From positions 2,232,001 through 2,296,000 of the forward strand of contig CM068769.1 in NCBI GenBank assembly GCA_035084275.1: DNA of 64,000 nucleotides, in the 5' to 3' direction. The stretch is from Hydrolagus colliei. Taxonomy: Eukaryota. The position numbers and the translations under genes are program-made. Shown piece after piece: positions 37,281 to 63,779 of this stretch. A model generated the notes under the pieces. The model was not told where the DNA came from. It saw only the letters and a list, made by a program, of their open reading frames with translations, and ran no database searches. Position 1 is the first letter of the stretch. Each line of letters starts with the position of its first letter.

Positions 37281-37974
37281 CGGCATAATAATAGTCCATC
37301 CCGTAAAACCACACTCATAAAACTGGTCATTTTAATCCAATATTGAGGGACACTGGTGTGCGGCTTTGGCTGCCACGTTTCGCGCGCAAATATATACAGT
37401 CTATTCACATTGCAGTATATTCCGTGAAGTGATTACAGACATCAATAAAACATGAAACGAGCTAGATCAAATGGATGAATTATTATTATTCGAAATATAT
37501 ACAGTCACTAAGCTTTCTCGTTTATATATTTTAATGCCTAGAAGCTTCTCGGAGATGCGTTGTAGCAATATATCTGATGTATGGATTAAAATATGGATCA
37601 TTTCAAAGTAACAAGAAAGAAATATCGATTCAACCACACTGATGATAGAAATTACCTGTTAGAATAGCAGCCAGAGCCATATACACACTGGGTCCCCCCA
37701 TCTCCAGATCTCACTGCACAGCTCCGTTGTGTCGTTGTCAATAGATTGATTTTGATCTGGGACAAGACACTTGACAGACACTGGATCACTATGGCATCAC
37801 TTCCTGATCCCATGTCATGGCCATCGCCTGCTCAATGTGTGGGGAAGTTAATGTGTCACCATTTATACACTAGTGGGAGGAGATTGTGAAATGAGTCTCC
37901 TATAAGCCAATTCAGTTTGTTGTCAGGCTTGGCAGTGAATTGCAGACTAAATGAGATTAGATAGGTAATCAACG

Positions 37975-38560
37975 GTCGGTTGAATGCCGTTTTCAGCTCT
38001 CGGTAGGACAACGCAAATGCCGTCCTTGCTGGTCTCCCCTCCACCACAATCCATTCAAATCAGCTCATTGAGAATTCTGCCGCCCAGGTTCTCACCCCCA
38101 CCAAATTGCGCTCCACGATGACGCCAGTCTTTTCCAGACTTCACTGGTTCACTGTCTCTTTGACCATCGATTACAAGATCCTCACTATTGTTTTCAATAC
38201 TCTCCAATCCTCTGCAACACCCAACTCTTTGACATCCTCTGTCACCAACACAGCACCCATTGCCATCGATTCTCCGATTCTGGTCTCTCGCTTGTCCCCC
38301 GAGTCCTCCGCTCCAGCATCCGCGGCTGTGCATTCATCCACTATCCCACGACGCTCTGGAATCCATTCCCCCACTCCTTTCGCCTCGCTCCCTCTACCTC
38401 TAGTTTCAGGTCTCGGATGCAGACCTTAATGTTTGTCCGTGCCTTCGGTCACCTTTTAACCCCTGCCACCGGCCCGTCCAGGGATCCACTACTGTGAAAC
38501 GCTCTGAGACGCCGCTTTGCTTAAAGAGCGCAGCATAACTCGAAGCTGTGATGTTGTTGT
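37975..38560 (+). mobile_element. L2-type LINE 3' fragment
   Basis: ORF 38106-38429 TPVFSRLHWFTVSLTIDYKILTIVF matches the L2 ORF2 C-terminus. Tail ttgttgttgtt. Confidence 0.75.
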
Positions 38561-38809
38561 TGTTATTGGTTCCATTGCACCTTCAGCTCAGAGTCTAAAC
38601 TGAAATTCACAGTCAGTGCTATATAAGGTTCGCAGTGGCATCCAATGTTCACTCACTTGAGGAACAGTTCTGCTAACATTTCTGTATGGAAATTACCTAG
38701 AGTGATTGCCTACAAAGCAGAGTACAATACAATGAAAGTATTACAACTCTACAGTGCATCTCACTGAGGTCGCAATTGCCAAGTCCCTGGATATCAGAAT
38801 AATAATGAT

Positions 38810-39115
38810 AATTCTTATATTTTATAAAGCGATGTTCAAATCTTGTCGATTTCTAAAAGCGTTTCCCAGAAAATATCTCCTAATTGAGTTGACTGTATAT
38901 TTTGTACATAACGCGGCAGCTTTTTCCACACAGCCGTGTCCCCTCACAAACAATCGTGGAGTAAAATTACCTATTTTATTTTTGTGTTTTTTCTTGGAGA
39001 GATTACTGTTTTGCGTGTGGAGTAAGGAAACTTGCCTAAGGTTTCGCCCTGACCTGCATGGATTCGAACACATGTCTCACACTTTTAAGGCCAATGCTCT
39101 AACCACTGCGCTACA
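38810..39115 (-). mobile_element. Full-length tRNA-derived SINE (Deu-like core, L2-like tail)
   Basis: On the minus strand: A-box tagcgcagtggttagagc, B-box gtgttcgaatcc, core ctgccgcgtt, tail tataaa. A similar full-length copy at about 48935-49255 and heads at about 12330-12440, 13420-13510, 14545-14650 and 15820-15910. Confidence 0.75.
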
Positions 39116-39165
39116 GGATCTAAACAATAAGCAAATTTCTGCACCTGAGGAAGCTCCAGCTTAGA

Positions 39166-40929
39166 ATAGCTGAGCTGGAGTATCAGGTGGAGACATTGCG
39201 GTGCATCAGGGAAGGGGAGAGCTTCTTAGATAGTTTCATCCTAGAGCCAGACACTCCACCAAGGCCTAGGGAACAAGACTGCGCTGTTGCCAGCCACGGT
39301 CAGGACTGGGTGACAGTCAGACAACCGGGTATGCGGAGCCACAAGAGTGGTGCAGAGAAACCCCAGACTGTAACCATTTCCAACAGGTATGAAGTACTTT
39401 CAACCTGTTTGGATAAGGCGGTCTGTGAGAAGGTTGGACAAACCAACTCCATAAAGACCATTTTAATAGGAGATTCAATTGTCCGAGGTACAGATAGGCG
39501 TTTTTGTGAACGGAAACGCGAATCTCGGAAGGTGTGTTGCTTACCAGGTGCCAGGGTTGAAGACTTCACTGAGCGGGTGCATGCAATTCTGCTAGGGGAA
39601 GGGGAAAATCCACTTGTGGTGGTCCATGTTGGGACCCATGAAGTTGAGAGGAAAAACCTGAGATGCGCCAGGGAGAGTACCAGAGACTAGGGAGTAAACT
39701 AAAAAGTGGAACTTCGAGAGTGGTGATCTCTGGGTTGCTTCCAGTGCCTCGAGCAACCCAGTTCCAGAATGCTGGAATAAGGCACATCAACTGTTTGTGA
39801 AATTAAAGGCCCATGGCGTAAAAGGGACAGTGTCAGCGTGGATCCACAACTGGCTGCGAGACAAAAAGCAGAGAGTTGTAGTGAGCGGCTGTTTTTCAGA
39901 ATGGAGGGAAGTGAGCAGTGGTGTGCCACAGGGATCAGTTTTGGGACCATTGCTGTTTGTAATCTACATCAATGATCTGGACTTGGGTGTACGGAGTACA
40001 ATTTCCAAGTTTACAGATGACACTAAGTTAGGGAGAATAGTAAATAGTGAGGAGCATAGTGGCCATCTGCAAGAGGATATAGACGAATTGATAAAGTGGG
40101 CAGACACATGGCAGATGAAGTTTAATGGAGGTGATGCATTTTGGGAGAAGAAATGAAAGTAGGCAATATAGGCTAGATAGTAAAATTTTAAATGGTGTGA
40201 AAGAACAGAGAGACATGGGGATTTGTGTTAGTGACTCGTTGAAGGTGGCAGGACAGGTAGACAAGGCTGTTAATGAGGCATATGGGATACTAGGCTTTAT
40301 AAATAGGGGTATAGAGTACAAAAGTCAGGAAGTGCTGACTGACCTATGTAAGACTTTCGTGAGGCCTCAGCTGGAATACTGTGGTCAATTCTGGTCACCA
40401 CGTTACAGAAAGGATGTGAAGACATTGGAAAGGGTACAAAGAAGATTTACTAGGATGGTGCCAGGATTGAGGGACTTCAGCTATGAGGAGAGGCTAGATA
40501 GGTTAGGGTTATTCTCTGTGGAGAAGAGAAGATTGAGGGGAGACCTAGTAGAGGTTTACAAAATCATGAGGGGTTTCGAGAGGGCAAATAGAGATAAACT
40601 ATTTCCACTGGTGGGCGAATCTGTGACTCGTAGTCACAGATTTAAAATAGTTTCAAGGCGAAGTAGAGGGGAGCTGAGGAGAAATATTTTCACTCAGCGA
40701 GTTGTTCGAATCTGGAATGCATTTCCTGAAAAGGTGGTGGAGGCTGATTCGATAACATCTTTTAAAAGGGAATTAGATCTTTATTTAGGGAGAACAGGTC
40801 TATTAGGCTATGGGGAGCGGGCAGTGCAGTGGGATTAAATCGCTCTTTTCAAAGAGCCGTCACAGACTAGATGGGCCGAATGGCCTCCTTTTGTGCCATA
40901 ACTTTCGATGAATCTATGAATCTATGAAT
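39166..40929 (+). mobile_element. Internally deleted CR1 LINE
   Basis: ORF1 esterase part (ILIGDSIVRG, CCLPGARV, VVHVGT) is fused to the distal RT (GVPQGSVLGP, KFTDDTKL, RPQLEYC, RLRGDL). Ends in (CTATGAAT)n. Confidence 0.92.
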
Positions 40930-42368
40930 AGTGTATGTGAGTGAAAGGCACTAAAATATATCAAGTGACATAGAGATAGCATTTTGATGAACAAAAGCCT
41001 CGTGATAATCAGCTTATTGATAAAGCTTTGTGGAATGCGGATCAAGCAACAATAGTGTATGTGAGTTAAGCAATGTTAACTGTAACAAGAAACAACTGTG
41101 ATAGCTACCAATGAATTGGTTATATAAAAGCACGTGGAAAGTTACATCATTTGCAGCTGATGTTATAAGTATGTTCAGTTCGCCACCTGGTGGTGATTGT
41201 CAGCTACAGCATCTTTGCAATGGATACGTTCGAAAGCAAATTATTTTAGGACTGTCTTGAATTATCCCTTCCGTTCTCCTCTCTTGGAAGGATATACCTT
41301 TGTCTCGTTCCCCTGCTTGTTCCTCATGTTTTACTAGCTTTACTAGAAAATTGGACGCGAATTTAATCCACAATCTGTTGGCGTATTCGTGCTCATACTT
41401 GCGTCCAACTGACGCCCAATCTAAGCTAATTAGTTGATTATTTCCTGTAAGTGTTTATATTATGTGACAGAACATTGTGGTGACGTTGGTCATGTTACAG
41501 TATCGCAACATTACATTTATATTTACAAAGCGTTATTCCCATTGGTAGGAGTTCCAAAATTCACTATTTTCAATTGGCAAATTATTTATTAGAATAATAA
41601 ACTAAGCTAATAATTTTAATTCTACAGTAGAGTATTACATCAATAATACAATCTGCGTTCATTCTTCGAAAATAGCATTGTGGTTTTAGCATTCCAGGCG
41701 TTAATTGAACCAGTTTTACGTGGGCAACGTTAATTGAGTTAATCAGCAATCCACGCGTTATAATGAGAAAATTCTGAATCTCATATTTTAGACAGATGAC
41801 AGAGCATTGAACTTCAATGTGTTTCCGAGTTACAATCGTGCTACAATATTGGTTACAGCCAGTCTTGAAGCAATGCTTTTTTTTTGTGACTGTGAATAAA
41901 ACTGGGCCCTAAGCTTTGCAAATTTCTGACTAAATCCATCCCTCTTGCCAAACCACCACTCACCCTCCACTTACCTCTCCGCACATTCTCCCTGACAATG
42001 TACTTAAATTACAGTTCCTCTTGTTACCACACAGTTCTGGAACAAGTTCCATCATGGTTATTTACTGTAGAACACGGCCTTACACGAAATAGGATTAATG
42101 AGAACAGGAGAAGGCCATTCATCCCCATGCATAAGGGATGACTATTAAGGGATAATGATCCCTGATAACTATTAAGCTGGTTATTACTTACTGCCAGGAA
42201 AACAGAGGCGTGTGTGTAAAATAAAGAAGGCTTATGTACAGTACACAATGTTTTGCTCTGCAATGAATGGAAACCAGGTGCTCTTGCAAAGCCAATGCTC
42301 TAACAACTGAGCTGCAGGCCTCCGCATGTGGGTTTCGTACGGCAGTAACACTGATCTGTGCCTCTGTG

Positions 42369-43046
42369 GGGCTCAGCGCACAGTAATACGCAGCAGTGTC
42401 AGTCACTGTCACTAGGGATATATTCAGTGGCACGGTTCGCCGCGCTTTATCCAAATTAGTTGAGAAACGTTCTTTTGCAAACTCTGCAGGATATTCCTTG
42501 TTGCTGATGATGTGTAACTTAAGTATATATTCTGGAGCTGTGTTGGTACAGTGACGCTAACATAATATATATGGAGTGCCGCCGCTTGTAGCTGTATAAT
42601 TTCATAGCAGATAGGCATATTCTCCTTCATTTAGTTTCACAGTAGATTTGTGCTGTGTCACAGAGTCTCCTCCACAAAGCTCTGGAAAACAGAAACACGT
42701 CATAATTCAATACCATCACAATAATTTTAATCATCATTTTGTGTTTCATACGGCGCCTTATCAAGTCGTTGATCAGCCTCCAATGAATTTACCTAATAAA
42801 ATTAGCAAAAGCAATGCTGTGGGTGTAACATTTCGCTCTGTCCTGCCAGGGAATCGAACCATGATCCTCCTGGCTGTGAAGCCAGTTCTATAGAAACTGA
42901 TATAATGTACACTCTAACTCCTCTAGCTCATTTTGTAATATTGTGTAACTTATGCGATAAAACATAGGATAATACTTTCGGAAACAACTACTGATAGAAT
43001 GCTTACCTGAAAAGGCGATGATGGCTGCTGCCACATTGATATACTT
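42369..43046 (-). pseudogene. TRAV/TRDV: TCR V pseudogene V10 (paralogue of V6)
   Basis: The leader start reads AAG. V exon 42369-42681 has TGA at the first Cys and TGT TAG at the WY position. RSS 42330-42368: CACAGAG-23-ACGAAACCC. Confidence 0.9.
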
Positions 43047-44718
43047 TGCTATCTGTATTTAATGGCATGCGTTGCAGTGAGAGAGTTAATCGTGTAGTTG
43101 GAGAATGTTATTTGGGAGTCAGAAAGATGCAGTGAGGAGGGATGAACAGTGAATGACATATAGAAGTTCCCATATACGTTGCGGAAGCTTGTCTGAGGTA
43201 TACTTATAACAACGTTTATTTACGTCTCTCAGCGTCATTTGTTCTGCTCTGCCCTCTGTCTCATCCATTGGTTCTCCATCAACCCTGACATGTCTTTGAT
43301 CAATCAGGTGCCTCAAACATGCAGCAACCTACACCCAAAATACAATTTCAATTCGTCCAAACACATACATGTTATTCAATTATCTGTTCTGTCTGTGCAT
43401 TCCTGTAGCTTAATGGTATCAACACTCACCACAACATTTAGAACAACAACAACTTCGATTTATATAGCGCACTACACGCCGCACGGCGTCTCAGAGCGCT
43501 TCACGTTGCCCCACAAGCAACGTGCCTGTGTTTGATCCAAGTAGGGCGAAATGTTGCATACGTTTTACTACTCTACCCACCCACTTCTGTTTACTTATTA
43601 AGAAGTAGCAGTTAATTTATACATCAATCTAGCTGGTTGGTTTCCTGTGTTAAGTACCCTGATAGAATATGTAATTGAATCCACCACTGTTTGTGTGACT
43701 TTGCTGTGCACAACTGGCTGCCTGGTTTCGCCTGCAAATCGCCGAATCACTACATTTTAGAGTGTAGTCTATCAGGCGATCAGTGACGTCACAAGGCAGG
43801 CCGAGGTATTCAGTGGAAGCCACTGAGTATATACAGAGGGCTAGACACTGGCCCATTGTGTGTTGGCTTCACATTCCCTGGGGCAGCTGGCAATTGGATA
43901 TCGAAGTGAAACCAGCCATTGAGAGGATTTCAAAGCGAAAGAGGAGAAGCCCACGTGTCGTCAACATTTTCTCAGATATCTCTGCCCCAGTTGGGTGGAG
44001 GTTTCCTTCCTGCCTTGTTTCCGCTCCAGTCTTCTGGGTTACAGGAGTTTAGGCAATAAACTCACACTTTTCTAGCAGAGATCATGCTTGCAAGATATGT
44101 GCTGTGCATTTTATTTCACTGAACTAGGCTTCATATAAAGACAAACAGATTTGTAAACCGTGTGTCTGAAACATTGTGAGATCCACCGAAATATTTGTGA
44201 GATTCTACATGAAGCTGTTCGTCGGAATAACCCTTCATTGTGATAAGTCGCCGTATCATGTCTTCACAACTTCTCTAAACGCTTCACTTGTTATACTGTA
44301 AAGTGTAGCATTAGTGTATTGTGTGGCAGAGAACTGCACATAGCATCGTCTCACAAAAAATGGTGGATCGAGGCAAAAACATTTGTTTAATGGATTACTA
44401 CACTCTCGAAGGCTATCCACCAAATGACTGTCAACCGCGATCCAATTTACTGCTCGGCAGAGTAAGATTAATAAGATTAATAATACTTGCATTTGATATA
44501 ACACCTTATCAATTCTATGAGAAATTACAAAGCGCTTAGTTTGTTGTGCAGTGAAGTGAGGTAACTATATGTTACCGGCTGTATGTGACAGCCAATTTCA
44601 TACAGCAGTCTTCCACAAACGCTCATGGATCGCAAAGGCGAGTGGAATATCCACTGAGCTATAGTAACATACAGCAGCATGTTTTTGTACAGGCTCCACT
44701 TAGACACGCAGCACTGTG

Positions 44719-45153
44719 CTCTCTGCTGCACAGAAGTAAGTGGCGGTGTCTGCAACTCGCACGTCTCTGATTGTCAGTGTGCTGTTCATCTCTTTTCTAT
44801 CAGCCAAAGCACTTATCCTCTCCTCCGTCTTCATCTCTCTGCTTCCCTTCACCAGCAAATGGATGGAGCCGTTTCCATTCTGTTTGTACCATTGGAAGTA
44901 AGGATCTTCCATAGTAGTTCGGCACTCTAGAGATACATTTCCATTTTCGTTCTCTGTCAGTGCCCGAGCACTCTGTGATACTTCACTATCAGCCAAGGTA
45001 CCTGGGGAATACAAATGAACATTCTTGGAAAGAAATACGGAAAACGTCTGGAACTAACTTGTCATTAGTTACTAGGGTAACAAGAATGCTATTGTCCAAA
45101 CTCACACTCTACTTACAGAAGAGCGAAATCATGAAACTAAAAATAATACACAT
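44719..45153 (-). CDS. TRAV/TRDV: TCR V segment V11, intact with canonical heptamer
   Basis: Leader 45117-45153 (MCIIFSFMISLF). V exon 44719-45001 (SLEC...WYKQ...DTATYFCAAES). RSS 44680-44718: CACAGTG-23-ACAAAAACA. Confidence 0.93.
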
Positions 45154-46009
45154 TGGTTTGTAAATTGGCTTCATTTTCAATCCTCGTCGATTCATGTCAG
45201 AATCTCCAGGTGAAATGCAGATAGACACTAGTTAACTGTTGATGAACGTTCATGAATGTTTGTCGTTTGCCGCCAACTGTGTTGCTCATATCTATTTTCC
45301 TGGCGAGGCCTCCACTGACGTCTCATTTCCTGTATGTTTACTTGTTTGACATTCTTTCCCCAATGCATTACCAGTAGCGTTCATTTTGCCCACCAGGTAG
45401 GAGGTCACTGGATATTACAGTAGATTATTTCAATCGCGTTGAATCATCTCAATGATCGAATCAATTACAACAACAACAACCTGGATTCATATAGCGCCCT
45501 TCATGCCGGATAGCGTCTCGTCCAACTTCTATACTTTTAATGTAGGCAAATGTAGCTTTTATTGTCAGCAATTTTATTATAAGTTTTTAAGGGAAATGCT
45601 CTATCGGAAGACATGTGCCTGCAAACATTAGTTCTGTTTAGAAATCAAGTCAGTATCAATTCAATTGATGGAAGCGTCTCAAAAGTCCACCCAAATACTT
45701 CTCTCGATGGCAAGTCTGTGTGTTTGGCAACCTCAACAGCCAATTCATATACAGCAATATTCCCTCAATCTGTGAAGTGAACAAAAAAATTATCCTGATG
45801 GAATGTCTGTCCAGTCAACAGGACAAACCCTGTTCTTGCTCTCGCAAGAACATGGGTTATTTCTCTAAATTTGTAGAAACCGACTGGACGTCTGTTGAAT
45901 CGTTCAACAGAAGGACACCTTCGCTGACATTCTAGACACTTCCCCCGGCCTGCACTGGAGTGTCAGCCCAGTACAATAGTGAGGAATCAAATATTTCATA
46001 CAAAAGCAA

Positions 46010-46420
46010 AATTATATTTGTATATCGCCTTTCACGTGAGGAGGACTTCCCAAGTGTCTGGACAGTTGTTGATTCAGACCCGAGCTAAGGACGGTTGGGG
46101 AGTGCGTGTGGAAGGATATGCTGATGGTTCCATCGAAAAGAAGTGTCTTGAGGCGAGACTTGAAGGAGGCTAAGGAGTGGATGAGTCGGAGGGAATGCGG
46201 GATGGAGTTCCAGATGTTGCGGGACAGAGTGGCTGAAGGCTCGCCCGCCAAAGTTTGGGCGGGTGGGTCGAAGTACATGGAGCAGGCTAGAGCCTGTTGA
46301 ATGGAGGAGGTGGGCAGCTTGTTACGTGGATAGTAGATCACGGCTATCTGTTGGGGTGAGGTTCTGAAGGGCTTTAAATGTGAGAACCAGGATCTTGATT
46401 CGGAGACACATTCCGAATAT
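46010..46420 (-). mobile_element. L2-type LINE 3' fragment
   Basis: Encodes WNSIPHSLRLIHSLASFKSRLKTLLF. Absent from block A. Confidence 0.75.
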
Positions 46421-47023
46421 GTAAGTTGCTTTGAACGTATTAAGTAGTAGATCAATTATAAATGATTCTTGATTGTTATTATATGGTTCTCCAAGATGTT
46501 TTTAAAATACATCATTAGAATTGATCAAGCGACATGATTCACCTGTCCCATAGCGCTTCATTGTAATGTGTCGTGACAGTGACAGTGTGTGTCCCAGTGG
46601 AGGTGACAAAATACCTGGCAGGCCATTGAGCACAGCAGTGTCCCACAAATATGCGTGGATAGAGAGATTGCATTTATATTATTCTGATTGTTTGACGTTT
46701 TATTGTACTAGGGAAAGCGATCCACCCATGGACTAACAATCAGGTTCCGAGTAACTGCTAGTTGAAGAGTTATGTGCGTCCAGAGTATGGAAAACTGCCT
46801 AAGGATTCCCAACGCCTGGGAGTCAAACCCAGGTCCACTAGTGAGCAAAACGAATACTCCAACCTCTGCACTACAGGTCTCCACAGACACTGTACACCGC
46901 CCTCTCTGTTATAATAGTGTAGCCACCTCAGTGTGTTGGCAGCACCAAGTTGAATGTGTGAGAAAAAGTCACGATTGTCTGCTGAGTTTTTGTACAGTGT
47001 GTCTGGCCTCTTGTCACAGTGTG

Positions 47024-47895
47024 GGCTCCAGGGCACAGTAATACATGGCTCCGTCACGCACAACAGACCTGAGTATTTGCAAGTTAAATGTTTTATTCTC
47101 CTTGTCCAGCTCTGCGTTGAAACGTTCAGGAAGGCTAGGAGATTTGTCTACCTTTCCAGAGGCATATATCCTGAGCAAGTACTGAACATCTCCACCGGGA
47201 TATTGCCTGTACCAGAAGGCAGTGATCATTGTGGAATAACTGCAGTTTAGTGTCATGTTTTCGCTTTCAAGTTCCATTATCTCAGGAGGATATTGGGTGA
47301 CTACATCTTTCCCGGTAACGTCTGCAATAATAAAATAACACATTTTCTAAGCGAAGCTAAAGATTAATTTGCACTTGGAATAATACTAATTATTATTAAA
47401 CTTGTATTCGCGAATTGTCACAAAATTAGGACGCTACAAGTTACAAACAAAACACCAACAGAATAAAATATAAAATGAGTTGTTGCCAAACTGTGTAGGC
47501 GAAACGCGGCAGCCAATTTTAAACAGCAGCGTCCTACAGGTAGTAGTGGAGTAGTCCGCAAATTATAGTTAATATAAGTACTGTTTTGATGGCATTGTTT
47601 TAACTGCAAAGCGATCCGCCTTCTAATAACTGCTAAACTCACAACGGCGTTTGTTTGGTTTAAAGCAACTTGTCCAACCACTAGCCCTGCCGTGATTCAA
47701 GATAAGGTGTGCTCTTTTTCAAAGTGAGTACAGTACTCTAAATACTACACTTCCATTATTATTTAAGAATAATATAGGTATTTGATAGAGTGCTTTTCAC
47801 ATCTTATAATACCAAATAATATGCACTAGGCCTGTCCACACATACTTACTGGCTATGGTGAGGATTGCTATCAGTAACTGACAGTGACCTGTCAT
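47024..47895 (-). CDS. TRAV/TRDV: TCR V segment V12, intact (paralogue of V8)
   Basis: Leader 47850-47895. V exon 47024-47321 (LNC...WYRQYP...MYYCALEP). RSS 46985-47023: CACACTG-23-ACAAAAACT. Confidence 0.93.
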
Positions 47896-49931
47896 TCTGG
47901 CTGCTGAGGTGACGACAGATAGTGGAAACTCTTCCTTTGTATATGTCTATTCGATGCTTCAGTGAAATGTAGTGAGGCAGCGACTGATCTGCTGTATGCA
48001 GGCAGTGAGTTATTCCATAAAATTGTAGGCGTTTCACACTAACCAGAGTATCTTGGCCTTAACCGGTTGCTGATTGGCTACAGGCGGACCGTGGTTAGAA
48101 TGGGGGGAATAGATGCATGCTTCACCCACGCACAAAAGTTTACAGTCTATAATCAAGACTGAGCTGACAAACTGCCTCTTTTGCTGGTACTATATCTAAT
48201 GAATCAGAAAGTTTTGGTTCAGACATCACGTTGTTGCACTGAGATGATGCTTCGACTGCAATTCAAATTGATGACTGTGTCAGGGCGGTATTGTCAACAA
48301 AACTTAGATAGAGCCAACGATCGCTTCACGTATATTCGTGGGAGAATTACTGTGTTCAAATTACCTATTGTATTTCTCTTCAAAATTCCGTCACGTATTC
48401 TCACACTAACTCACATTAAACGCTTCGTTAGCATCTCTTGTATGAAGGCATGTTATAAAATGCAAGGATTCTTCTAATTATTATCCAAAGCAGGACGGCC
48501 CGAACTCAGAAATATCACGAGTTCTTTAAATCAAAAATAAAATTAAACTGAACAATGTTATTCTCCATTTCCAAATTAACCAAAGAGAGTGCCCCTGTAG
48601 CCCTTGAGAAAGCGTAACATGTTTAACACCACAGGGAGAGCCACTCAATGGAGCCTGATTAGTTTTTTGGGGACACAAATAGAAAAAGTAGTAAGATAGG
48701 AAAGATGTGACATCAAGTGATTCTGGAACAACAATATCATTAATTATGTTTTAGCTCAACAAACATAAGCACTTTTCAGCTGTAGTGGTAAGAGTGTATA
48801 TGAGGCAACACATCAACTGTAACAGGAAGCACCTGCTCACAAGGAAGTTAGTTACAGATAGGAACGAGGCTATTTATGTCAGTTGCAGCTCATGACAGAT
48901 ACTGTATGTGCTTAATGCGCCGACTGCCGATGCATTAAATCATTGCATTTGATATAGCGCTTGCCACATCTTAGTAACGTCCCAAAGCGCTTCACAGAAT
49001 ATACTGTAAAACGAACTGACTGTATATGTTTGTGGGCGAATCGATGCAGCCAATTGCACATAGCAGTGTCCCACACACAGTCGTGGATTGAAATGACCGA
49101 CTTTATAGTTGTGTTTCTTGGAGGGATTATTATTATGCGTGTGGAGTAAGGAAACTTGCCCACGATTTCGCCCTGACTCACCTGGATTCGAACACATGTC
49201 TCCCCAGCTTGGTTTCCCCAGCTTGCAAGACAAGTGCTCTAACCACTGGGCTACAGGAGATCCAAATTTCAGGTTCAGAACGTGTACAATTGGAAACATT
49301 TCACAGTAAATGGTTTCCAGCCACGCTCAACATTCCGTTTCTGAATGGCGCTGTATAAACGCAAAATATTGATTTAATTACTTTTTTTTAGATGTTTTGC
49401 AATCGACTCGAAATACACAGAAAGACTTGTATATGGTTAAGGTTTCCTCAAAAGCGGAATATTGAGGCTTTGTCTGTGACAATACCGTATTTAATAAAAA
49501 ACTATCTATATTCCTTTGATATATATTTGCCTTTTATATATAACCATATCATATCTTAGAGGTTCAACATAGCGCTTTATCGAATGCAATGTTAACGCTT
49601 TGAAATCTTATTGTGTGGGAGAAACGCGGAAGCCAAGTTTGCACATCAGATATCGATTGGATTGAATGAACAATTTATTAATATTATCAATATTCTGAAG
49701 GAATTCTTACGCCCGGAATAGCGAATCACTAATCTGCTAACAACATAGTTCCGAATTACTGCCATCTAAACAGCTACATATGTATGGAGTAAGAAAACTT
49801 GCCCCATATTTCGCTCAGCCGTGAATTCAAACCCTTATATCTTACCTGTGAGGCGAGTGTTGTAACCACTGAGCTATAGGACTCCACACGGTAGTTTTTG
49901 TACGACGATACCACTGATCTCTGTCTCTGTG

Positions 49932-50761
49932 GAGCTCAGTGCACAGTAATACACCGCCGAGTCTGTGACTCTAACTTGGGATATATTTAAAGGGACGGTT
50001 CTCCCCACTTGATCCACTGTTGATGAGAAATGTCCTTTCGCAAAGTCTGCACATTTTGGTCTGTTGCTGGTGGATGTCCTGAGGATATATTCTGGAGAAG
50101 AGTTGGGATAGAGACGGTACCAGAATAGGTAATATATGTTGTTGCTTGTAGCTGTATAATTACACTGCAATATTGCATTCTCCCCTTGATCAGCTGTCAC
50201 AGTAGATTGGAGTTGTGTCACAGCGTCTCCTTCGCAAAATTCTAGAAATAATATAAATGAATAATAATAATGTAAATAACGATAATCACAAAAATATTGA
50301 TGTTAGTAATCTTTTCATTGGCTACAACGCCTTAGCCTGTATCCGCGACAGCATGAAGCGCGTCACAGAATATTAATTAAGCACATTTTCTGGGCAAAAC
50401 GTCAGAAACAATTGCGCGTATCAGTTTCCCCAAAACACTAGTTAATCGATTGATATATATACGATTACATTTTTGGAATTCAATGCTTAGGTGACGCGAT
50501 CAGTAAGTTTATCTACAGTAGGGTTCCTATTTAAGACTAGTGAAACGCGGTCGTGTGTGTGCCGGAAGTAAACTTGACTGTAGATTCGCCTCCCTACACA
50601 CTCAGATACAGGACGTGACCGCGTTTCAAGCCCTGCAGTTTATTGGTTATCTCGTGCAATAAGAAAACAAACTCATAGGATAATACGTGCAGGCACATAT
50701 TGATCTAAGTTTGCGGCTTACCTTCGAATATAACGATGGCTGCTGCCAGGTAAATATACAT
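49932..50761 (-). CDS. TRAV/TRDV: TCR V segment V13, intact (paralogue of V9)
   Basis: Leader 50722-50761. V exon 49932-50241 (YYCALSS). RSS 49893-49931: CACAGAG-23-ACAAAAACT. Confidence 0.93.
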
Positions 50762-51931
50762 TGTGATATGTGTGTTTAGTGACATGTGGTGTTGAGGGAG
50801 AGTTGATGGTGGAGTTCCACATCGTTGGCTGGGCGGCAATTAGATGCGGTGTTGGTGGTTGAACAAGATATGGCATTCAGAATTTACTGAGTAGGTCTGA
50901 AGGTTATTCACAACACTTATATCTCTGTCAATTTGCATCATTCACTTTGTTCTGCCATCCTGCTCCCTCATTGGATCTCTTCCATCAATATGGTCAAGAG
51001 CTGAAACGGATCATTGTGAGGGTTCAGAGCCAATGGGCAGGAGACACGTTACATCACCATCTTCTCAGATGTCTCTGCCCTAGTTACTTGCAAGTTTCCT
51101 TCCTGCCCTAGTTCCTCGCCAGCCTTCTGGATGCAGCCGTTTTCGTATAAAACGCACGTATTTTGTAGCACAATTGATCGCCCAAATTTGGTTTGTTTCG
51201 CTGAATTGCATTACGTATTTTACTAACCAGTATGTAAACATGTGAAGAACACATCCCATGCTTGTAAGTGTACGAATCAAAATTTGACTAACAATAAATA
51301 TTATCGTTTGAAGTAGCATCATATCACAGCTGCAAAACATCTCTAATCTTTTCACAAGAAGAACTGCCAAGGGTTGCGATCATGTATTTTCTCTATAAAA
51401 TACACGGCAGCCAATTGCACACAGACTTGTCTAGCAAACCGTAATGGAGAATCATCCATTTTGTTATTGGAGTGCTGACCCAGGAAAGGCTATCGGCCAG
51501 TCGTGTAGCAGCCGGTTTCCTACATAATGCTCTGCATTAGTGTAATAATAATCCTTGCATTCAAAATTGTGACTGATTCTTTATTCAGAGTTCTGCTGTG
51601 AAGTGAATTGAACTGATATGTTGGGCTAATTGCAGCAGGCAATGTGTGCAGAGCAGCGTCTCACAAACAGTCGTGGATTGACGTGAATATTTGTATTTTT
51701 CAAATGTATTATGACCATCAGGAAAGTGATCCCTCAATGAATGGCGAAACAAATACCTATAAACAACTACTATTAGCAAAGGCGTGTGGAATAAGGATAA
51801 TCGCCCAATATTTCGTCCAGCCAAGCATCGAAACCCAGCTCTACTTGTTTGCGAGATGAGTTATGTATAGTATAACTACATGGACCTCATCCTGTTTTTG
51901 TACAGGCTCCTCTGAGACACGCAGCACTGTG

Positions 51932-52385
51932 CTCGTTGCACAGAAGTAAGTGGCAGTGTCTGTCATTCGCACATCTTTGATTGATAGTATGCTGTTTTTC
52001 TCGTTTGTGTTAGCCAAGGCACTTATCCTCGGCCCTTCCTTCATCTCTCTGGTTCCCATCACTAAGTACTGGATGGAGCCATTTCCATATTGTTTGTACC
52101 AATGAAAATATAGGACAGAACCAATGGACCTGCAATTCATAGATGCATTTCCATTTTCATTCTCTGTCAGTGCCTGAGGATTCTGTGACACTTCGCTTTC
52201 AGCCAAGATATCTGGGGATTAGAAATGAACAATCCTTGAAAGAAATGAGAATATTATCTCCAAATTTAATTTGTAATTATTCATCAGTGAAATTAGAAGG
52301 TCTTATGTTCAAACAAATAAACCCACTTACACAAAAATAATAAGAAGAAATTAAAAACAGCGTATGTTGCAGTGAAATTCTGCAT
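51932..52385 (-). CDS. TRAV/TRDV: TCR V segment V14, intact with canonical heptamer (V11 family)
   Basis: Leader 52331-52385 (MQNFTATYAVFNFFLLFL). V exon 51932-52211 (YFCATS). RSS 51893-51931: CACAGTG-23-ACAAAAACA. Confidence 0.92.
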
Positions 52386-55858: not shown

Positions 55859-55950
55859 ATCTCCGCACAGAAGTAGGTGGCGGAGTCAGATATTCGCACG
55901 TCTCCGATCGATAACGTGCTATTTTTTCCAATCACCAAAGCATTCATCCA
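55859..55950 (-). pseudogene. TRAV/TRDV: 5'-truncated V relic V16 (FR3 only) with retained RSS
   Basis: KNSTLSIGDVRISDSATYFCAE followed by CACAGTG-23-ACAAACATT (55820-55858). A SINE lies immediately upstream. Confidence 0.85.
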
Positions 55951-56699: not shown

Positions 56700-57240
56700 T
56701 CCCTTTCTTCCTCTTTCTAAATCACACACTCACTCACTCACTCACTGCGTCACTCACTCACTCACTCAGTCATCACTCACTCTCTCACTCACTCATTCAC
56801 TNNNNNNNNNNNNNNNNNNNNNNNNNNNNNNNNNNNNNNNNNNNNNNNNNNNNNNNNNNNNNNNNNNNNNNNNNNNNNNNNNNNNNNNNNNNNNNNNNNN
56901 NNNNNNNNNNNNNNNNNNNNNNNNNNNNNNNNNNNNNNNNNNNNNNNNNNNNNNNNNNNNNNNNNNNNNNNNNNNNNNNNNNNNNNNNNNNNNNNNNNNN
57001 NNNNNNNNNNNNNNNNNNNNNNNNNNNNNNNNNNNNNNNNNNNNNNNNNNNNNNNNNNNNNNNNNNNNNNNNNNNNNNNNNNNNNNNNNNNNNNNNNNNN
57101 NNNNNNNNNNNNNNNNNNNNNNNNNNNNNNNNNNNNNNACTTACACTCAGTCACTCACTCAGTCACTCAATCAGTCACTCACTCACTCAGTCACTCACGC
57201 ACGCACGCACGCACTCGCTCACTCACACTCACTCACTTTA
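56700..57240. repeat. (TCAC)n microsatellite spanning an assembly gap (N 56802-57138)
   Basis: Direct observation. Confidence 0.95.
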
Positions 57241-57437: not shown

Positions 57438-60400
57438 CTACACTCTGACCGTGGCGTAGACTATACCAGGGTCCACGTTGGTGTCACGGGCATTCTCACT
57501 CCTGTTTCCTAACACCAGATTGGCGTAGGTGATATCATCCTCCTGCAAACTGGTTAACAATTAGCAAACCTGCCGAAGGATAGTGGGAAACACCGATTCC
57601 TCCCTCTAACACCACTAACCCACCGCTGAGAGGCACCAAATTATAGATACTGTGTGTGTGTTTGGTTGCGTGAGTATTTCTCTCATTCATTCGTTCACTC
57701 ATTCAGTCTCCCAGTGTTTGTGTGAGTGTGTGCATTCGGCTTGCAGGATCGAACATTTGCATCCGCACAATCCAGTCCCCGTTTGCTTGTTCGCTTACCT
57801 GCGTCTCTCAAGGACGTGATCAAGACACCTCTCTGCTTCGACCAATGTCCTACCCATACCCTACCTGCCGACTGAATCCATATACCACAGCACAGGTCTA
57901 AATCCCTGACTGACTAGCGAATTGGGATGTACATACGCAGGTGCAAACATTTGCAGACAGGCACACAAAGACACACATGCATACAAATATGCACAAATAC
58001 ACGCACATATATATGTACAATTTAACACAAGTACACAGAAACAAACATACACATATAGGCACATACATACTCACAGATACAAACACAGAGACAAGCTGTT
58101 TCCTAGGCTATGCTGAGTCAGTCTCACACATAGCCTGAACTGTTCTTTATTCAGGTTTACACAGGGCGGTGCTCGACTGACACAGAATCGGATCTGGGCT
58201 AAGCCCGGCTGACACGGGGCGTGAGCTACACTGACAAAGCCTGCGCTGGCCTGATACAGGACCTAAGCTAGGCTAAAACAATGATTCTGTTACCACTCAC
58301 CTCTGGAGTCTCTGATCGTCGAGCTCTTCTCACTGTAGCACCTGAAACAACCACAAACGTGATTTATCAGCAGCAATGTTTCAGGAAAACTCACCGGTAA
58401 TGATTAATAATATTGACTATATCAATGCATACAACTTAGTATTATTAAAGAAAATAAGAACAATAATTATGCGACAGTGATTGAATATTAATTCTTGTAT
58501 TTAGAATAAATCCTTATAATATCGACAAACGATCCCAATGTGCTTCAGAATAGACGTGGTACAGTGGAGAGACCGTGTGTCCTCCCGATGGAAATGGCGC
58601 TCTGAAAAGTTGTTGGCGATTCTATTGTTGCCTTGTTATATAACAGATGGCCATAAATCCAATTTGCGCACACTAGGGACACACAGACACATAGTTAGAC
58701 CACATACAGACACACAGGTAGATACATACACACCCACAGCTTGACAAAGACAGACGGCAATGAGTCAGAAAGATAGAGTGAGGCTAACAGAACAATAATC
58801 ATAATAATCATCCTGGAATTTGATGTGGCCCTTTCCACATCTTCTAGAATTCTCAAAGCGCTAGACAGAATATACAGTGAATTTTGTGGGCGAAACGCGG
58901 CAGCCAATTGCGCACAGCAGTGACCACGAAAAGTCGGGGATTCAAATGCCCTCTCATTTGGAGGAGTTTGATGAGCAAGCGATGGATATGTATGGTGCTC
59001 AGTCCCATTGCTGAGCAGGTCTGTCTGTGACCGGCACCTTTCCTTCTCGGTTCAAACCCAGGAAACCTCTCACTCACATGTTATGTCTTCTGCGCCGCCT
59101 CCCGCAGGTACAATCCTGAAAAATGTATCATACAGGAAAGAGGAATACATTAACTGCTGTTTTATTCAAGAGGACAACAGAGCTCAGGTCTGGGCTTGTT
59201 TCGGCGCCAACAAAAAATATTGTCTGTCAACTAGGGAAAAATGGATCTGACAGGATTGATTCTGAATGAGCAACAAGGACACGAGGGGCTGAATGATCTG
59301 TGCATTATAGTATTGTGTGCAGTTATGGTCTCCGTTTGAAGAAAGGATGTACTCGCCTATTTGCGGCGGACGGTGGGTGGTGTACATAAACATAGATTCA
59401 CTAGGTTGGTACCTGGAATGAGGTAGGAGCTATGAGACTAAGTTGAGACATCTAGGCCTACGGTTTGTAGAATAATGAAGAATCAGAGGTGATCCTATAG
59501 AAACCTATAAAACTATTAAGGGGCACAACACATGAAATAGTGGGAGACAGTTCACCAGGTTGGAGAAAATATAACCAGGAACACAATATTACAATTATGG
59601 TTCAGCCCTTTCGCACAGAGTTACGGAAAAACTTATTTCAGGTATTCGTGAATTGATGGAAATCTCTACCCCCAAAGGGGTGTACATGCTCGGTCCTTGT
59701 AAATGAAAGTCGTGGTCGGGGTAAGTGGAGGGAGAGTATGAAAGGGTGAAGAATTAGAAGGATAACAGAAGGCACGGTCGAAGAGGATGTTCTTGAGACC
59801 GGCCTTGAAGGAGGAAAGAGAGGAAGTGAGGCAAAGGAATTGCAGGATGGAATCCCACTGGGTGGGAGCAGAGAGTGTGGCCTATTCCAGGACCACCGAT
59901 GGTGATGCGGTTGGGACGATGGACGTGGAGCAAGCAGTGCCTGATGAGTGATAGAGAGACATCAGTTCGGATCGATAGGCGGGGTTCAAGTCCTCGAATG
60001 GCCAGGAATGCGAGGGTGAAGATCTTGAATTCGTCCACAGACTGAATTCGTCTCGGACTCAAATTATGCATTTGGATAGCATCTCAAAAGCTCATCGCTT
60101 AAAATGGGAAAAAATGTCGCTCAACCTTATTTCTGCTTGCCCAGTTAGGACCACAGTTAGTGATTGCCTTGCAAAATGAGCGGCACAAATACATTATCTT
60201 CAATGCCTGGCCTGGACTTCTAAACCTTGACTGTGAGAGTTTTTTGATCACGATGGAGAGAGACCAATGAATTGTTTCAGAGTAGAGAGCTCAAGTTTCG
60301 AGCGAGAACAATGGGAGATATGTTGGGGGGAGAGAGAGGTAGAGAGAGTGAGCAAGGAATCAGATCAGAATAGAGAACTTCAGTGAGGGAGCTAGCAACA

Positions 60401-62787
60401 ACACAAACACGTTGCGGATACAACAAATAAAGGGGTAATTGAAGCAATGTACTTACATAGTGCTTTTATGTTTGCCTGTAAATACAAAATGTAATAAAGC
60501 TTAAAAATGATTAAGTAATTGCGGTGTATTGTTGCAAGATTAGCAATGATAACGCTTCCCTTTTTTCCAATGTCAAAATTCTTCATAAGCGATCGTTTTC
60601 AATAACACTTTCCTTTAAACAGCACCCCTACACCCCACCCACATACATTCACACAGAGACTCTGTCACCAGCTTGACAAGCAATAGATCTGAATATGTAA
60701 CCCTGCAGCACAAAATGTTGTGTAATTGTTCTCAATTCAGTCGCCTCTGTTTATCTAAAAACATCAACAACAGAAACAAATAAAAAACTACATCAGTAGG
60801 AACCCAGTTAGTGGATTTAGGGCGTCAATTTCCACCGAATAATAATCCCTCAAAACTAACAATGATAATAACAATCGGGTCATTCAATGCAAGGCTGTTG
60901 GTGGAAAACTGCTGTGCAAAGTTGGCATCTGAGTGAAAAAACATAGAGTCAGGTCACCTGCAAATATATCCTCTGAATGTTTTTTGAGAGATATAGAAGA
61001 AGTAGAGAGCACAATATCGAATGGAAGAATTATAACAGTAATTAACGTAATACTGATAATTATTACTATTGCTGGTTTTGTGGTATTACGATGAATATTT
61101 TAACGGCACTATTGTCATTATATTTATCAATATTTTCGTTATTATCATTAGTATTGGTGTCATTATTATTTCTGTGATCTTTGTTACTGAATTGTTATCG
61201 CAGTTCTCATGTAACAATCTACAGAAATAAACTGGATGGAAACAGATAGTGGTGTGCTCCAAATATGCCGCTTCCTTTATTTCCAACAATTCTACGCTAT
61301 ATTCCGTGACAATCATGAACACTCACCTCTATGATACACATAGAATCCAAGAATGATCACTATGATGATTATCGCAGTGAGAATCCCCACTGTCAGACCT
61401 GCTGTGTGCTTCCACGTCCAGTTTGCTGGAGAGGGAAATAGGCAAAGTGTTACTTGACGATTTGAAAAGCAAATGTCGAAACACAAATCATCATTTTAAA
61501 GATTTCAAAGAGGTACTATCTTCTCCTGACGTCTCAGGATGTGAAAGTGAATCAGAAATGTAAATGTGTGCTTTACGTTTCTCTGTTCTAATTGAAACAG
61601 TCGCATTCGCCACCAGCCTGACCTCATTATCAACGCGATTTGCTGAAAAAAAAATACTTGTCGAGCGCTATCACGTCAGGAGTACATTCCAAGGAGCCGG
61701 AACGTCACTGAGTCAGACGCGAGCTGGGGATGGGGGAAAGTAGGCATTAGGAGGTCCAGATGTGGCAAGCGAAGAGGAGGATGTTGAGGCGGAAATTGAA
61801 GGAGGCCAGGAAGGGGACGAGGCGTTGGGATTGCAGGATGGAGTTCCAGAGATGCGTGGCAGAGCAGCTAAAAGCTCGTCCACCATTGGTGGGGCGGATG
61901 AATCGCTGGACCTCGAGCAAGAGGCAGAGCCTGCTGAGCGGAGGGTGGCGGGCAGGTTGATAACCGAGTAGAAAGTCAGGGAATTAGGATGGGGCTAGAT
62001 TGTGGATTGCTATAAATATGAGGACCTAGATATTGAATTGGATCTTCTGGACGATGCAGAGCCAATGGAGTCGTGCGATTTTGGAGGAGATGGTGTCTCG
62101 AAGGTTGGAGCACTAGAGGGTACGGGCCGCAGAGTTCTGGATCATCTCCAACCTTAGCACGGAGGTTTGCGGAAGGCCGACAAACAGGGCATTGGCATAG
62201 TCAAGACGGGATTGAACAACAACAGCAACTTGGATTTAGACAGCGCCCTCCACGCTGAGCGGCCTCTCCAAGCGCTTTAGTGAAATAATCAATGCAAGAT
62301 TGAAGATTTTATCGGTCTTGTGTTGAGTTGGTTGCGGAGTCAGACAATATTGCAGAGTCAAATTGTTCATATGTTCATATGATCCACCGCTGTAAATGGT
62401 GTTTACAAGAGAAGCAGCTGCAAATTATCCAAAGGGAAACATGCTATTGTGTGAGAGTTTACTCAACTCTTATCCATTACAGAGATTTTACTCAACTCTT
62501 ATCCAGTACAGAGATTCCGACTCGATCACTCTCTCGTGAAGTGAATTCCCGGCCGCTTACGTGTATAGTATATTTACAGCAGTAATTTCTTGCCGTGACG
62601 TTCGATGAGGTGAATGTGGCCGTGTTGTTATTCTCTGGAGCTGGGCGTGATGCGCTAAACTCGCCGTCTCTGTAAAAAGAGAATGTGCTGCCACGATAAT
62701 TCCCAGAACCTGAGATCTGAGCGATATCTCCTTCCACAAATTCCCGGGTATCACTGTTCAGGGAAATGTTGGGTTTCTGCAGCGGAT
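57438..62787 (-). CDS. Inhibitory Ig-superfamily receptor (LRC/LAIR-like; C2 Ig + TM + 2 ITIM), 5'-partial, Ig exon possibly defective
   Basis: Four frame-compatible exons: 62503-62787 (Ig, phase 1-1), 61327-61425 (TM GLTVGILTAIIIIVIILGFYVY, phase 1-1), 58301-58341 (phase 1-0) and 57438-57542 (EDDITYANL...IVYATVRV*). All have AG acceptors; the TM and 41-nt exons have GTGAGT donors. Confidence 0.85.
59300..60060. mobile_element. CR1 3' fragment (about 59300-59690, +) and L2 3' fragment (about 59700-60060, -) in the receptor intron
   Basis: Similar to the 3' regions of the 39-41 kb CR1 and the 32-35 kb L2 (DEFKIFTLAFLAIRGL). Confidence 0.6.
61650..62250 (-). mobile_element. L2-type LINE 3' fragment in the receptor intron
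   Basis: gatggagttccaga...gagcagctaaaagctcg...gacctagatattgaattg is the reverse complement of L2 3' sequence. Confidence 0.65.
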
Positions 62788-63779
62788 CTGGAATTAAAAC
62801 ACAGTAATGTTGATCCCACTAGTAAGCGCTCTGCACCACAGACACGGATCAGATCAGAGTAAAAGTGACCATTTAGTCGTATCAAGGACTGGAGGGGAGG
62901 GAGTTGGGAATTGATTGGCAAGCGTAGTATTGTTGGGATTGATTGAGAAACCCCAGCGAGTTTTTCTTCACACAGAGAGAGGTGGCGCGACGGTTGGGAG
63001 ATGGCATTTGGGATTGGGCAGGGAAACAAGTGTAACACATAGCTCCAGACTAGGACAGGAGAAAGGGAATACAGAATGACCCTTGATCTACAAACGTCTC
63101 TTTATACAACAGAATGCAATTACAGCCAAGGAATTAATCGGAGAATTTAGGAGCAAAAGCTACACAAACTGTGGAGTGAGGAGAAGGGAATCATTGTCTG
63201 AAACTCATCTGAGACACAGCACCAGCTCAACCGCCAACCCAAGCTCAGCCACCAACGTAAGCTGCTCAAGTACCCGAAGCTCAGCTCCCAAAACCATCTC
63301 AAACGTAAAACTAACTTCAGTCCCGCTCCCAGGTTAGCGCTACCTCCAGCTAAGTGCCCACAAACAGCCCAACATCCAACCTCAGATTAGCTCATCACTC
63401 AAATAAGCACCTACCCCAGCTCAGTAGAACCCTACTTTAGCTCGGCTTCTATGTCCAGATCATGTGTTTACACTGGGCTGTTGAAAGCATATGGACATCC
63501 TCGAGGTAAATAGTTGTATTTTATGTACCTCGCAGGGTCCGATGATATATCGATATATGGGTTATATCCGGTATAATTTGTATATCGATACGCAGTTTTG
63601 GATCATTCAGAAAAAAATCCATATAACGTCGAAGTCTTTATATCGAAAACAATGGAATGCACGCGCACTCAACAACAACAGCAAGAATGCTCATCTCTAT
63701 ACACCATGCACAGACCGAGGTGCAAGACGCCATATTGTATTCATAGTCCTAGAATGAGATACATAGTTACGCAAGATGT

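Follow-up and report, generated by a model that had tools for sequence, protein, structure and literature searches.

The receptors of the leukocyte receptor complex (LRC), including LILR and PIR-B, NKp46, OSCAR and chicken CHIR, are encoded by fast-evolving multigene families that contain pseudo-exons, and their Ig domains have a Trp-less C strand. In mammals and chicken, the inhibitory members carry ITIM tails, and others combine a short tail with an Arg in the transmembrane (TM) segment; ITIM-bearing and activating forms are similarly mixed among the FCRL and fish LITR-type receptors. In LAIR1, two ITIMs accompany an LRC-type Ig domain that adjoins the membrane. Pseudo-exon 3 of KIR2DL1-3 is an Ig exon that is in frame in an LRC receptor gene and is nonetheless omitted from the mRNA. 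In the human genome, the LRC maps to chromosome 19 and TRA/TRD to chromosome 14, that is, to different paralogons.

We analyzed a 64,000-nucleotide stretch of the genome of the chimaera Hydrolagus colliei (the window; contig CM068769.1, positions 2,232,001 to 2,296,000), in which four minus-strand exons make up the 3' end of a gene that is not annotated and belongs to a chimaera receptor family, in the neighborhood of a cluster of V segments. The relevant features are as follows.

62788..63166, minus strand: intron preceding the Ig exon; its counterpart before the Ig exon of the Callorhinchus milii paralogue P0020 is homologous
62503..62787, minus strand: membrane-proximal Ig (C2) exon, apparently of the LRC type; 285 nt, phase 1-1, wholly open
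62501..62502, minus strand: expected splice donor, AT instead of GT (G to A at +1)
62495..62496, minus strand: sole in-frame alternative GT (AGA/GTTGAG), 6 nt past the expected donor
62453..62516, minus strand: tandem duplication with a 29-bp unit, 2.2 copies matching at 94% (Tandem Repeats Finder)
61327..61425, minus strand: TM exon of 99 nt; phase 1-1, acceptor AG, donor GTGAGT; tblastn match
58301..58341, minus strand: cytoplasmic exon of only 41 nt (GATVRRARRSETPE); phase 1-0, acceptor AG, donor GTGAGT
57438..57542, minus strand: last coding exon with two ITIMs, phase 0-stop; stop codon TAG at 57438-57440
56802..57138, no strand: run of 337 N between the receptor gene and the V cluster
55864..55914, minus strand: V relic closest to the receptor gene (..NSTLSIGDVRISDSATYFCA), 1.5 kb past the receptor stop codon; tblastn
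842..52191, minus strand: V cluster of 14 V segments, some of them pseudogenes (tblastn), several with a heptamer, 23-bp spacer and nonamer recombination signal (RSS)

Translation of the window reproduced exactly the four peptides that an earlier, sequence-only reading had proposed to be spliced together, and the product matches a C. milii protein annotated as 'alpha-1B-glycoprotein-like' (XP_007910588.1) with an E value of 3e-81, 57% identity and 98% coverage, a match that is not due to chance. The spliced frame is open across all 178 codons, and canonical splice signals are present at seven of eight sites, including an AG acceptor at each of the four exons and GTGAGT donors at 61327/61326 (TM exon) and 58301/58300 (third exon). 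The proposed splicing thus holds at the three later acceptors and at these two donors, but its first junction (..ISVL / ANWTW) lacks a GT donor, the Ig-exon donor being the sole exception. The same reading had noted that three of the four exons were absent from its list of open reading frames, consistent with a default cut-off of 60 aa, under which only the open reading frame of the Ig exon (81 aa) would be listed.

Gene structure places these exons in the same family as their C. milii counterparts. The phases 1-1, 1-1, 1-0 and 0-stop are those of the C. milii paralogue genes; the TM exon matches in length and phases the TM exons of P0020 (locus L001, 15580-15678) and P0021 (L002); the short cytoplasmic exon has its counterpart in the HTTVRIPPRAVPPD exon of P0020, with identical phases; and the last exon shows DNA homology with its equivalents in L001 and L002. 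The likeness extends into noncoding sequence, with 70.6% blastn identity over 698 nt between 62482-63166 and L001 14736-14063. A tblastn search of the window with the family proteins yielded no other family exon from the Ig exon to base 64000, and neither a start codon nor a signal peptide or first exon of the gene is present in the window; its 5' end, with any further Ig or SRCR exons, lies beyond base 64000.

The family is lineage-expanded and multigene and, apart from the window gene, has so far been seen only in C. milii, where 28 further members were found; in all, it comprises at least 33 chimaera proteins. Per-domain scores separate these 33 proteins (131-178 bits) from everything else (at most 61 bits). 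The window gene is absent from the protein collections searched; its Ig domain is 57-64% identical to the C. milii family domains, and the best annotated member is 58-60% identical to the gene. The window gene and the C. milii family share the Ig signature DPLQKPNISL..ISCSGNYPGSNFSLYRDGEF..AGNYxCKY..GRxFTSPESERVGISV, the TM exon beginning ANWTW.., the two-ITIM tail ending in ..YATVRV, the exon phases and homologous intron ends, so that both the signature and the characteristic gene structure (1-1 Ig exons, 99-nt TM exon, short exon, ITIM exon) are found in the window. Unlike the C. milii genes, the window gene lacks the first Cys of the Ig domain and has AT at the donor; without the canonical Cys pair and GT donor of an intact Ig exon, it is a damaged member. 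Family architecture is variable, with one to six Ig domains, SRCR domains present or not, B30.2 or SRCR domains added in some members, and a tail that either bears ITIMs or is short and accompanied by a charged TM segment, the same mixture of ITIM-bearing and activating forms as in FCRL and LITR-type receptors and the same two kinds of tail as in the LRC. Like the LRC families, it is a fast-evolving multigene family with pseudo-exons. The literature searched contained no dedicated description of this family or of an elephant-shark LRC/ITIM receptor.

The TM segment, GLTVGILTAIIIIVIILGFYVY, is free of charged residues, and the tail carries ITYANL (57516-57533) and IVYATV (57447-57464, both on the minus strand), which fit the pattern (I/V/L/S)xYxx(L/V/I), with tyrosines 23 residues apart; an uncharged TM segment with two ITIMs, as claimed in the earlier reading, is thus borne out by the translated exons. 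The ITIM motifs are kept in paralogues P0012, P0015, P0020, P0021 and P0023, and the tail end ..YATVRV is common to the window gene and P0012, P0020, P0021 and P0023. Judged by its sequence, the window gene is of the inhibitory subtype of its family. The ectodomain of such a receptor would bind a ligand, Src-family kinases would phosphorylate both ITIM tyrosines, and the phosphorylated motifs would recruit SHP-1/SHP-2-type phosphatases, dampening activation; the activating counterparts would be the short-tailed family members in which the TM segment is charged.

Placing the Ig domain required profiles because searches with the single sequence gave only weak matches: the window peptide alone had sub-threshold Ig matches in Pfam (Ig_3 at 0.035, Ig_C19orf38 at 0.033) and only CD166, at 0.018, in the PDB. 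Profile matches to solved structures comprise PirB, FCRL5, LILRB1-4, LILRA2/5/6, NKp46, KIR3DL1, OSCAR, FcalphaRI and GPVI, with FCRL5 second best (4.6e-40); when two-domain chains are compared, FcR score 48-50 bits and LILR 60-64 (10-15 above). In the fold search, the best 10 matches were all LRC proteins (query-normalised TM-score, TMq, 0.75-0.84), headed by CHIR-AB1, LILRB4, LAIR1 and NKp46, whereas FceRI and FcgRII, as classical Fc receptors, matched less well (TMq 0.61-0.63). Profile and predicted fold therefore support an Ig domain of the LRC type, probably nearest to CHIR-AB1, LILRB4, LAIR1, NKp46, OSCAR and PirB; by profile FCRL5 is also close, and the classical Fc receptors are more distant. 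Like these LRC receptors, the window gene has a Trp-less C strand. The description of the gene as an LRC-like ITIM receptor is thus upheld, with LRC members on top in both searches. The LAIR1-type layout of the same reading, if taken as a single Ig domain, would depend on the exons beyond base 64000. LAIR1 is not the closest relative by sequence: although LAIR1 has the same two ITIMs and membrane-proximal LRC-type domain and is the third fold match (TMq 0.78), it is not among the best 60 sequence-profile matches, and the nearest solved relatives by sequence are LILR, PIR and NKp46. The identity to these mammalian and chicken receptors is about 20%, and the surroundings differ from the LRC, namely, TCR V segments next to the window gene and SRCR/B30.2 extras in the family.

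The Ig exon shows several lesions. The intron that follows it starts with ATAAGA (donor G/AT), whereas 10 of the 11 paralogous C. milii Ig exons end in g/gtaag or g/gtagg (donor G/GT), and the intron sequence after the paralogous donors is homologous, for example, gtaagagctcagtaaaatc as against g/ataagagttgagtaaaatc in the window. The 29-bp duplication covers the final 14 nt of the exon and the start of the intron, so that the GGATAAG junction of copy 1 is repeated in copy 2; the G to A change might reflect an error of assembly or an allelic difference within this duplication. A U12-type AT-AC intron was ruled out, the donor being ATAAGA rather than ATATCC and the acceptor AG. Within the domain, the first canonical Cys (position 27) is replaced by Gly (ISGSG for ISCSG), and the conserved Gly at position 67 by Arg. 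In a survey of 52 family domains, C27G, G67R and I45S each occurred in none; Cys27 is present in all 52 and Gly67 in 98%. The sequence-only reading is silent on the missing Cys. Departures from conserved family positions number 7 of 34, which is high, yet inside the family range, and dN/dS against the paralogues (0.42-0.72) is non-discriminating and does not demonstrate relaxed constraint, its values being like those among the C. milii paralogues (0.45-0.60).

Given the AT donor, the duplication at the junction, the lost Cys and the Gly to Arg replacement, a pseudo-exon is the likeliest reading of the visible Ig exon; put more broadly, this exon is probably a pseudo-exon or part of a decaying copy. 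Decayed Ig pseudo-exons are known inside C. milii family genes (L002 6934-7227 and L004 9773-10057). Since Ig exons are of phase 1-1, such an exon can be skipped with the frame kept, and the gene may do so if good Ig exons lie upstream, beyond the window; skipping here is hypothetical, with pseudo-exon 3 of KIR2DL1-3 as the parallel. Alternatively, the gene may be a recently disabled copy with TM and tail exons still intact. The open codons, the seven canonical splice signals and the retention of both ITIMs imply that any inactivation is recent or partial. The competing explanation is an intact, expressed inhibitory receptor that uses the cryptic GT, or in which the AT is an error or an allele, and that tolerates a Cys-less Ig domain; it might then be a single-Ig, two-ITIM receptor resembling LAIR1, the third-best fold match. 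We regard this as unlikely, although it has substance. The frame runs open through four exons and would be kept by the cryptic donor (giving ..VLDK-T-NWTW), the remaining splice sites are canonical, the ITIMs are conserved, and the overall count of deviations stays within the family range; the AlphaFold model of the domain is confident (pLDDT 89.6), but this confidence derives from the alignment and says nothing about stability without the disulfide. Against an intact gene, AGA/GTTGAG departs from the consensus of vertebrate 5' splice sites everywhere except at -3 and GT, no family domain surveyed lacks Cys27 and nearly all have Gly67, the window holds neither a start codon nor a signal peptide, nor any first exon, and annotated relatives mostly have two to six Ig domains or SRCR domains, which speaks against a single-Ig layout.

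The V cluster lies downstream of the receptor gene on the same strand, and the relic at 55864-55914 confirms the previously reported distance of about 1.5 kb. RSS were found at six V ends. One V type (44721-44987) best matches TCR alpha and delta chains, and a second best matches antibody V domains; the nearest proteins are C. milii V-set proteins, with at most 72% identity to C. milii V genes. J and C segments are absent from the window, as is any LRC framework gene, the neighbors of the receptor gene being V segments and repeats only. Only 1.2 kb of the window remain upstream of the Ig exon, and further V segments could follow beyond them, so that the earlier placing of the gene at the 5' end of the V cluster is not supported.

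The adjacency itself can be read in three ways. A contig misjoined at the N run, which would make the linkage an assembly artefact, appears improbable: the 337-base run does fall at the very point that separates the gene from the V cluster, and C. milii family genes are mostly on small unplaced scaffolds, an indication that such regions assemble poorly, but the two flanks consist of one and the same (TCAC)n microsatellite, identically oriented (56722-56801, 20 copies; 57144-57237, 24 copies), as expected of an unresolved or masked stretch in one repeat. Still more improbable is a remnant of an ancestral complex of LRC-type receptors and rearranging genes, the linkage envisaged in the sequence-only reading. 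The shared strand and the 1.5-kb spacing to a V relic agree with such a remnant, as do published models in which Ig/TCR and NK-complex genes share one ancestral MHC-paralogous chromosome (PMC10751288). The papers on the primordial complex, however, nowhere mention LRC/ITIM receptors beside TCR alpha/delta. The LRC paralogon differs from that of TRA/TRD, the family is lineage-expanded (paralogue dS 0.28-0.59) and scattered over at least eight C. milii contigs, the window copy is damaged, and its link to the V segments crosses an N gap. Furthermore, no V-like sequence was found in the 10 kb on either side of five C. milii family loci or a relative in the catshark Scyliorhinus torazame, a sampling (+/-10 kb around six loci) beyond the reach of which a wider TRA/TRD regional association would lie. 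A GBP gene adjoins one of the C. milii paralogues. The simpler reading is a secondary landing, in which one copy of a dispersed, fast-duplicating family would have come to lie beside TCR alpha/delta-type V segments. Taken jointly, the 3' portion of a family member, an Ig pseudo-exon and a secondary landing beside V segments make up the explanation that we favor and consider reasonably probable.

A single copy of a scattered family beside V segments says little about an ancestral complex, and its position bears on the 'primordial immune complex' only if conserved across species, against which the present evidence speaks. There is accordingly only a slim chance that LRC-type paired receptors are a regular, conserved part of the holocephalan TCR alpha/delta region; if they were, that region would be a surviving link of NK/myeloid receptors to rearranging receptors, as primordial-complex models predict. 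Chimaeras carry a large set of paired receptors, in ITIM and charged-TM forms, with LILR/CHIR-like Ig domains, which helps to date the LRC/FcR-type receptors to the root of the jawed vertebrates, and the window copy adds one unannotated, probably crippled member. The family models have been named automatically and inconsistently (P0020 as 'DMBT1-like', P0021 as LOC121851362, and others as 'OSCAR', 'IGSF1-like' or 'M130-like'), and elasmobranch relatives carry the automatic name 'Fc receptor-like protein 5'.

The exons, ITIMs and leukocyte receptor complex (LRC)-type Ig domain of the receptor gene in the Hydrolagus colliei window are real. When the minus strand of 56500-64000 was translated, the four peptides quoted in the sequence-only reading were recovered letter for letter, and all of the 178 codons across the four exons are open. 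The exons are the following (^ marks the exon end).

62787-62503, minus strand: Ig exon, 285 nt, phase 1-1, acceptor ttccAG
61425-61327, minus strand: TM exon, 99 nt, from ctccAG to G^GTGAGT
58341-58301, minus strand: third exon, 41 nt, from tttcAG to GAG^GTGAGT
57542-57438, minus strand: last exon, from ttgcAG to TAG

As described in that reading, the TM segment contains no charged residues, and the tail carries two motifs, ITYANL and IVYATV, each of which fits the ITIM consensus, with the tyrosines spaced by 23 residues; the reported absence of three exons from the ORF track is also consistent, since an ORF list cut off at 60 aa would contain the Ig exon and none of the other three. The proposed in-frame splicing holds in part: the frame is maintained across the four exons, but the Ig exon has no GT donor, the following intron beginning with ATAAGA, not GT. 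The 1.2 kb between the Ig exon and the window end upstream of it contains neither a signal exon nor an SRCR exon nor a second Ig exon. The window ends, upstream of the gene, in a G/C-rich low-complexity array (63800-64000) with periods of 24-55 bp.

The spliced 178-aa peptide matched XP_007910588.1 of Callorhinchus milii ('alpha-1B-glycoprotein-like'; E 3e-81, 57% identity, query coverage 98%) and three more C. milii proteins, and XP_007910588.1 as the query retrieved 28. A domain-profile HMMER scan of 1.84 billion representatives yielded 810 proteins at E<=0.001. In a set of 165 proteins re-scored per domain, the scores break sharply, with 33 proteins at 131-178 bits and all others at 61 bits or less. 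The 33 high scorers come from C. milii wherever they are named (5 have no recorded name). Next to them come receptors with several Ig domains from sharks, rays, bowfin, bichir, coelacanth and a lizard, automatically named FCRL5, IGSF1-like, A1BG-like, DMBT1-like or PECAM-like. The window gene adds a member to a receptor family of known kind; all of its closest proteins are from C. milii, yet the identity is only 58-60%. It agrees exon by exon and phase by phase with the C. milii genes for P0020 (locus L001) and P0021 (locus L002), and the ends of the introns flanking the Ig exon are homologous between the window and the paralogues.

Family members contain one to six Ig domains, preceded in some by SRCR domains. 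The long-tailed members carry two or three ITIMs, and the tails of P0012, P0020, P0021 and P0023 end in YATVRV, identical to the window ending; the short-tailed members (P0003/P0026, P0018, P0016 and P0007) have Arg or His in the TM segment. Judged from the protein sequences, this combination is the pattern of paired inhibitory and activating receptors. P0003, P0026, P0018, P0016, P0007 and P0013 together include short-tailed, SRCR+Ig and one Ig+B30.2 (TRIM-like) forms, and the automatic names of the C. milii family are inconsistent (A1BG-like, OSCAR, IGSF1-like, DMBT1-like, M130-like and TRIM17-like).

The assignment of the domain to the LRC type passed both a sequence-profile comparison and a fold comparison of a predicted model. 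A six-domain family profile run against all PDB sequences matched NKp46, LILRB2, FceRI-alpha, OSCAR, LILRA3/B1, CHIR-AB1 and FcgRIII (E 1e-4 to 0.1). With a 60-sequence profile, the top matches were PirB (7e-42) and FCRL5 (5e-40), along with LILRB1/2/3/4, LILRA2/5/6, NKp46, KIR3DL1, OSCAR, FcalphaRI and GPVI; among two-domain constructs, LILR scored 60-64 bits versus 48-50 for FceRI/FcgRII. The AlphaFold model of the window domain is confident (pLDDT 89.6), and all of its ten best structural neighbours are LRC proteins, including CHIR-AB1 (query-normalised TM-score 0.84), NKp46 (0.83), LILRB4 (0.82), LAIR1 (0.78), LILRA5, OSCAR, PirB and LILRB1 D3D4; the scores for FceRI and FcgRIIa are 0.61-0.63. 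On these profile and fold scores, the separation from FCRL is modest. The more specific designation LAIR-like found no specific support: LAIR1 is among the ten best fold neighbours, yet lies outside the top sequence matches. Nor does the part of the gene inside the window support a LAIR-type layout with a single Ig domain.

The Ig exon itself appears to be damaged. Five C. milii loci supplied 11 paralogous Ig exons for alignment. In 10 of them the junction reads g^gtaag(a/t)g or g^gtagga, in many cases with agtaaaatc next, whereas the homologous window intron begins ataagagttgagtaaaatc, with a G-to-A change at donor position +1. The exon-intron junction is enclosed in a tandem duplication with a 29-bp unit (62453-62516, 2.2 copies), and the sole nearby in-frame GT, AGA^GTTGAG, would make a very poor donor. 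Within the domain, Cys27, present in all of the 52 family domains surveyed, is replaced by Gly, Gly67 of the G-x-Y-x-C motif (98% of the 52) by Arg, and Ile45 (90%) by Ser; none of these three replacements occurs in any of the 52. Several observations speak against damage: although the 7 departures at 34 conserved positions place the window domain in the top four of 53, they are inside the range, dN/dS against the paralogues (0.42-0.72) resembles that among the C. milii paralogues (0.45-0.60), and all codons remain open. Furthermore, the donor change might be a base-call error or an allele. We nevertheless consider that, judging from its sequence, the window Ig exon is probably non-functional and that the receptor gene as a whole is probably crippled.

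Decayed Ig exons, each with in-frame stops, lie between intact ones in annotated C. milii genes (L002 6934-7227 and L004 9773-10057), and in that of L002 the GT donor is also lost and Phe replaces the Cys. Pseudo-exons thus seem to be common in the C. milii family, such that a skipped pseudo-exon would be a family habit, and skipping is possible because the Ig exons are of phase 1-1. With a non-functional Ig exon, the window receptor gene would be either recently disabled or dependent on upstream exons beyond the window.

Downstream of the receptor, on the same strand, the window contains 14 V segments (842-52191) and one relic (55864-55914), the latter 1.5 kb from the receptor stop codon, as claimed. 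Further V segments may follow beyond base 64000, so the gene may lie at the 5' edge of the cluster, as proposed, or inside it. Six of the V segments end with a heptamer, a 22-23-bp spacer and a nonamer. The proteins closest to the V segments of the window are V-set proteins of C. milii; compared with eleven V genes of that species belonging to the same subgroup, the identity is at most 72%. The V type at 44721-44987 best matches TCR alpha and delta chains. A run of Ns (56802-57138) separates the receptor gene from the relic. Because this run is embedded in one (TCAC)n microsatellite, identical on both flanks (20 copies at 56722-56801 and 24 at 57144-57237), it fits an unresolved or masked repeat better than an arbitrary join, which falls short of proof.

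The adjacency had been put forward as relevant to an ancestral linkage of NK-type receptors with TCR genes; this is not supported, given that the sampled loci lack V segments, the family is scattered and the window copy is damaged. Five C. milii loci (L001-L004 and L006) and the nearest Scyliorhinus torazame relative (L005) were sampled, and no V-like sequence occurs within 10 kb of any of them; the C. milii family genes lie on at least eight different contigs, one locus adjoining a GBP gene. The antigen-receptor complex of cartilaginous fishes links IgH, some IgL, UrIg2 and PSMB5 to TCR alpha/delta, with no mention of an LRC or ITIM receptor (PMC12227049), and in an MHC-paralogon analysis the genes grouped with Ig/TCR are those of the NKC (C-type lectin), the LRC lying elsewhere (PMC10751288). 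A regional association of the family with TCR alpha/delta at the chromosome scale seems very improbable. The simplest explanation is secondary arrival: the family is young and scattered, and the copy next to the V segments is one only and damaged.

The V cluster includes a tandem duplication of blocks of about 9 kb (23856-32028 and 42174-51377, 75-83% identity), in which three V types recur in the same order. For the V type at 49934-50227 (related: 24058, 30661 and 42371), the best PDB sequence matches are antibody V domains, not TCR alpha; by sequence, this could be an Ig-like V, of which cases are reported from the TCR delta loci of cartilaginous fishes, or reflect database bias. Three V pseudogenes (19497-19781, 42371-42667 and 28113-28388) comprise two with in-frame stops and one with YYG for the YYC cysteine. 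A GC-rich (53%) stretch at about 31700-36000 contains LINE-like open frames on the plus strand, the longest being 453 aa; these share an IQNSAAR motif with a fragment in the receptor Ig-to-TM intron (about 61.7-62.3 kb, located partly by eye). A SINE-like repeat, about 330 bp long, is present at 38798-39128, 48938-49258 and 58791-58946, with many copies also in the C. milii family loci (72-80% identity).
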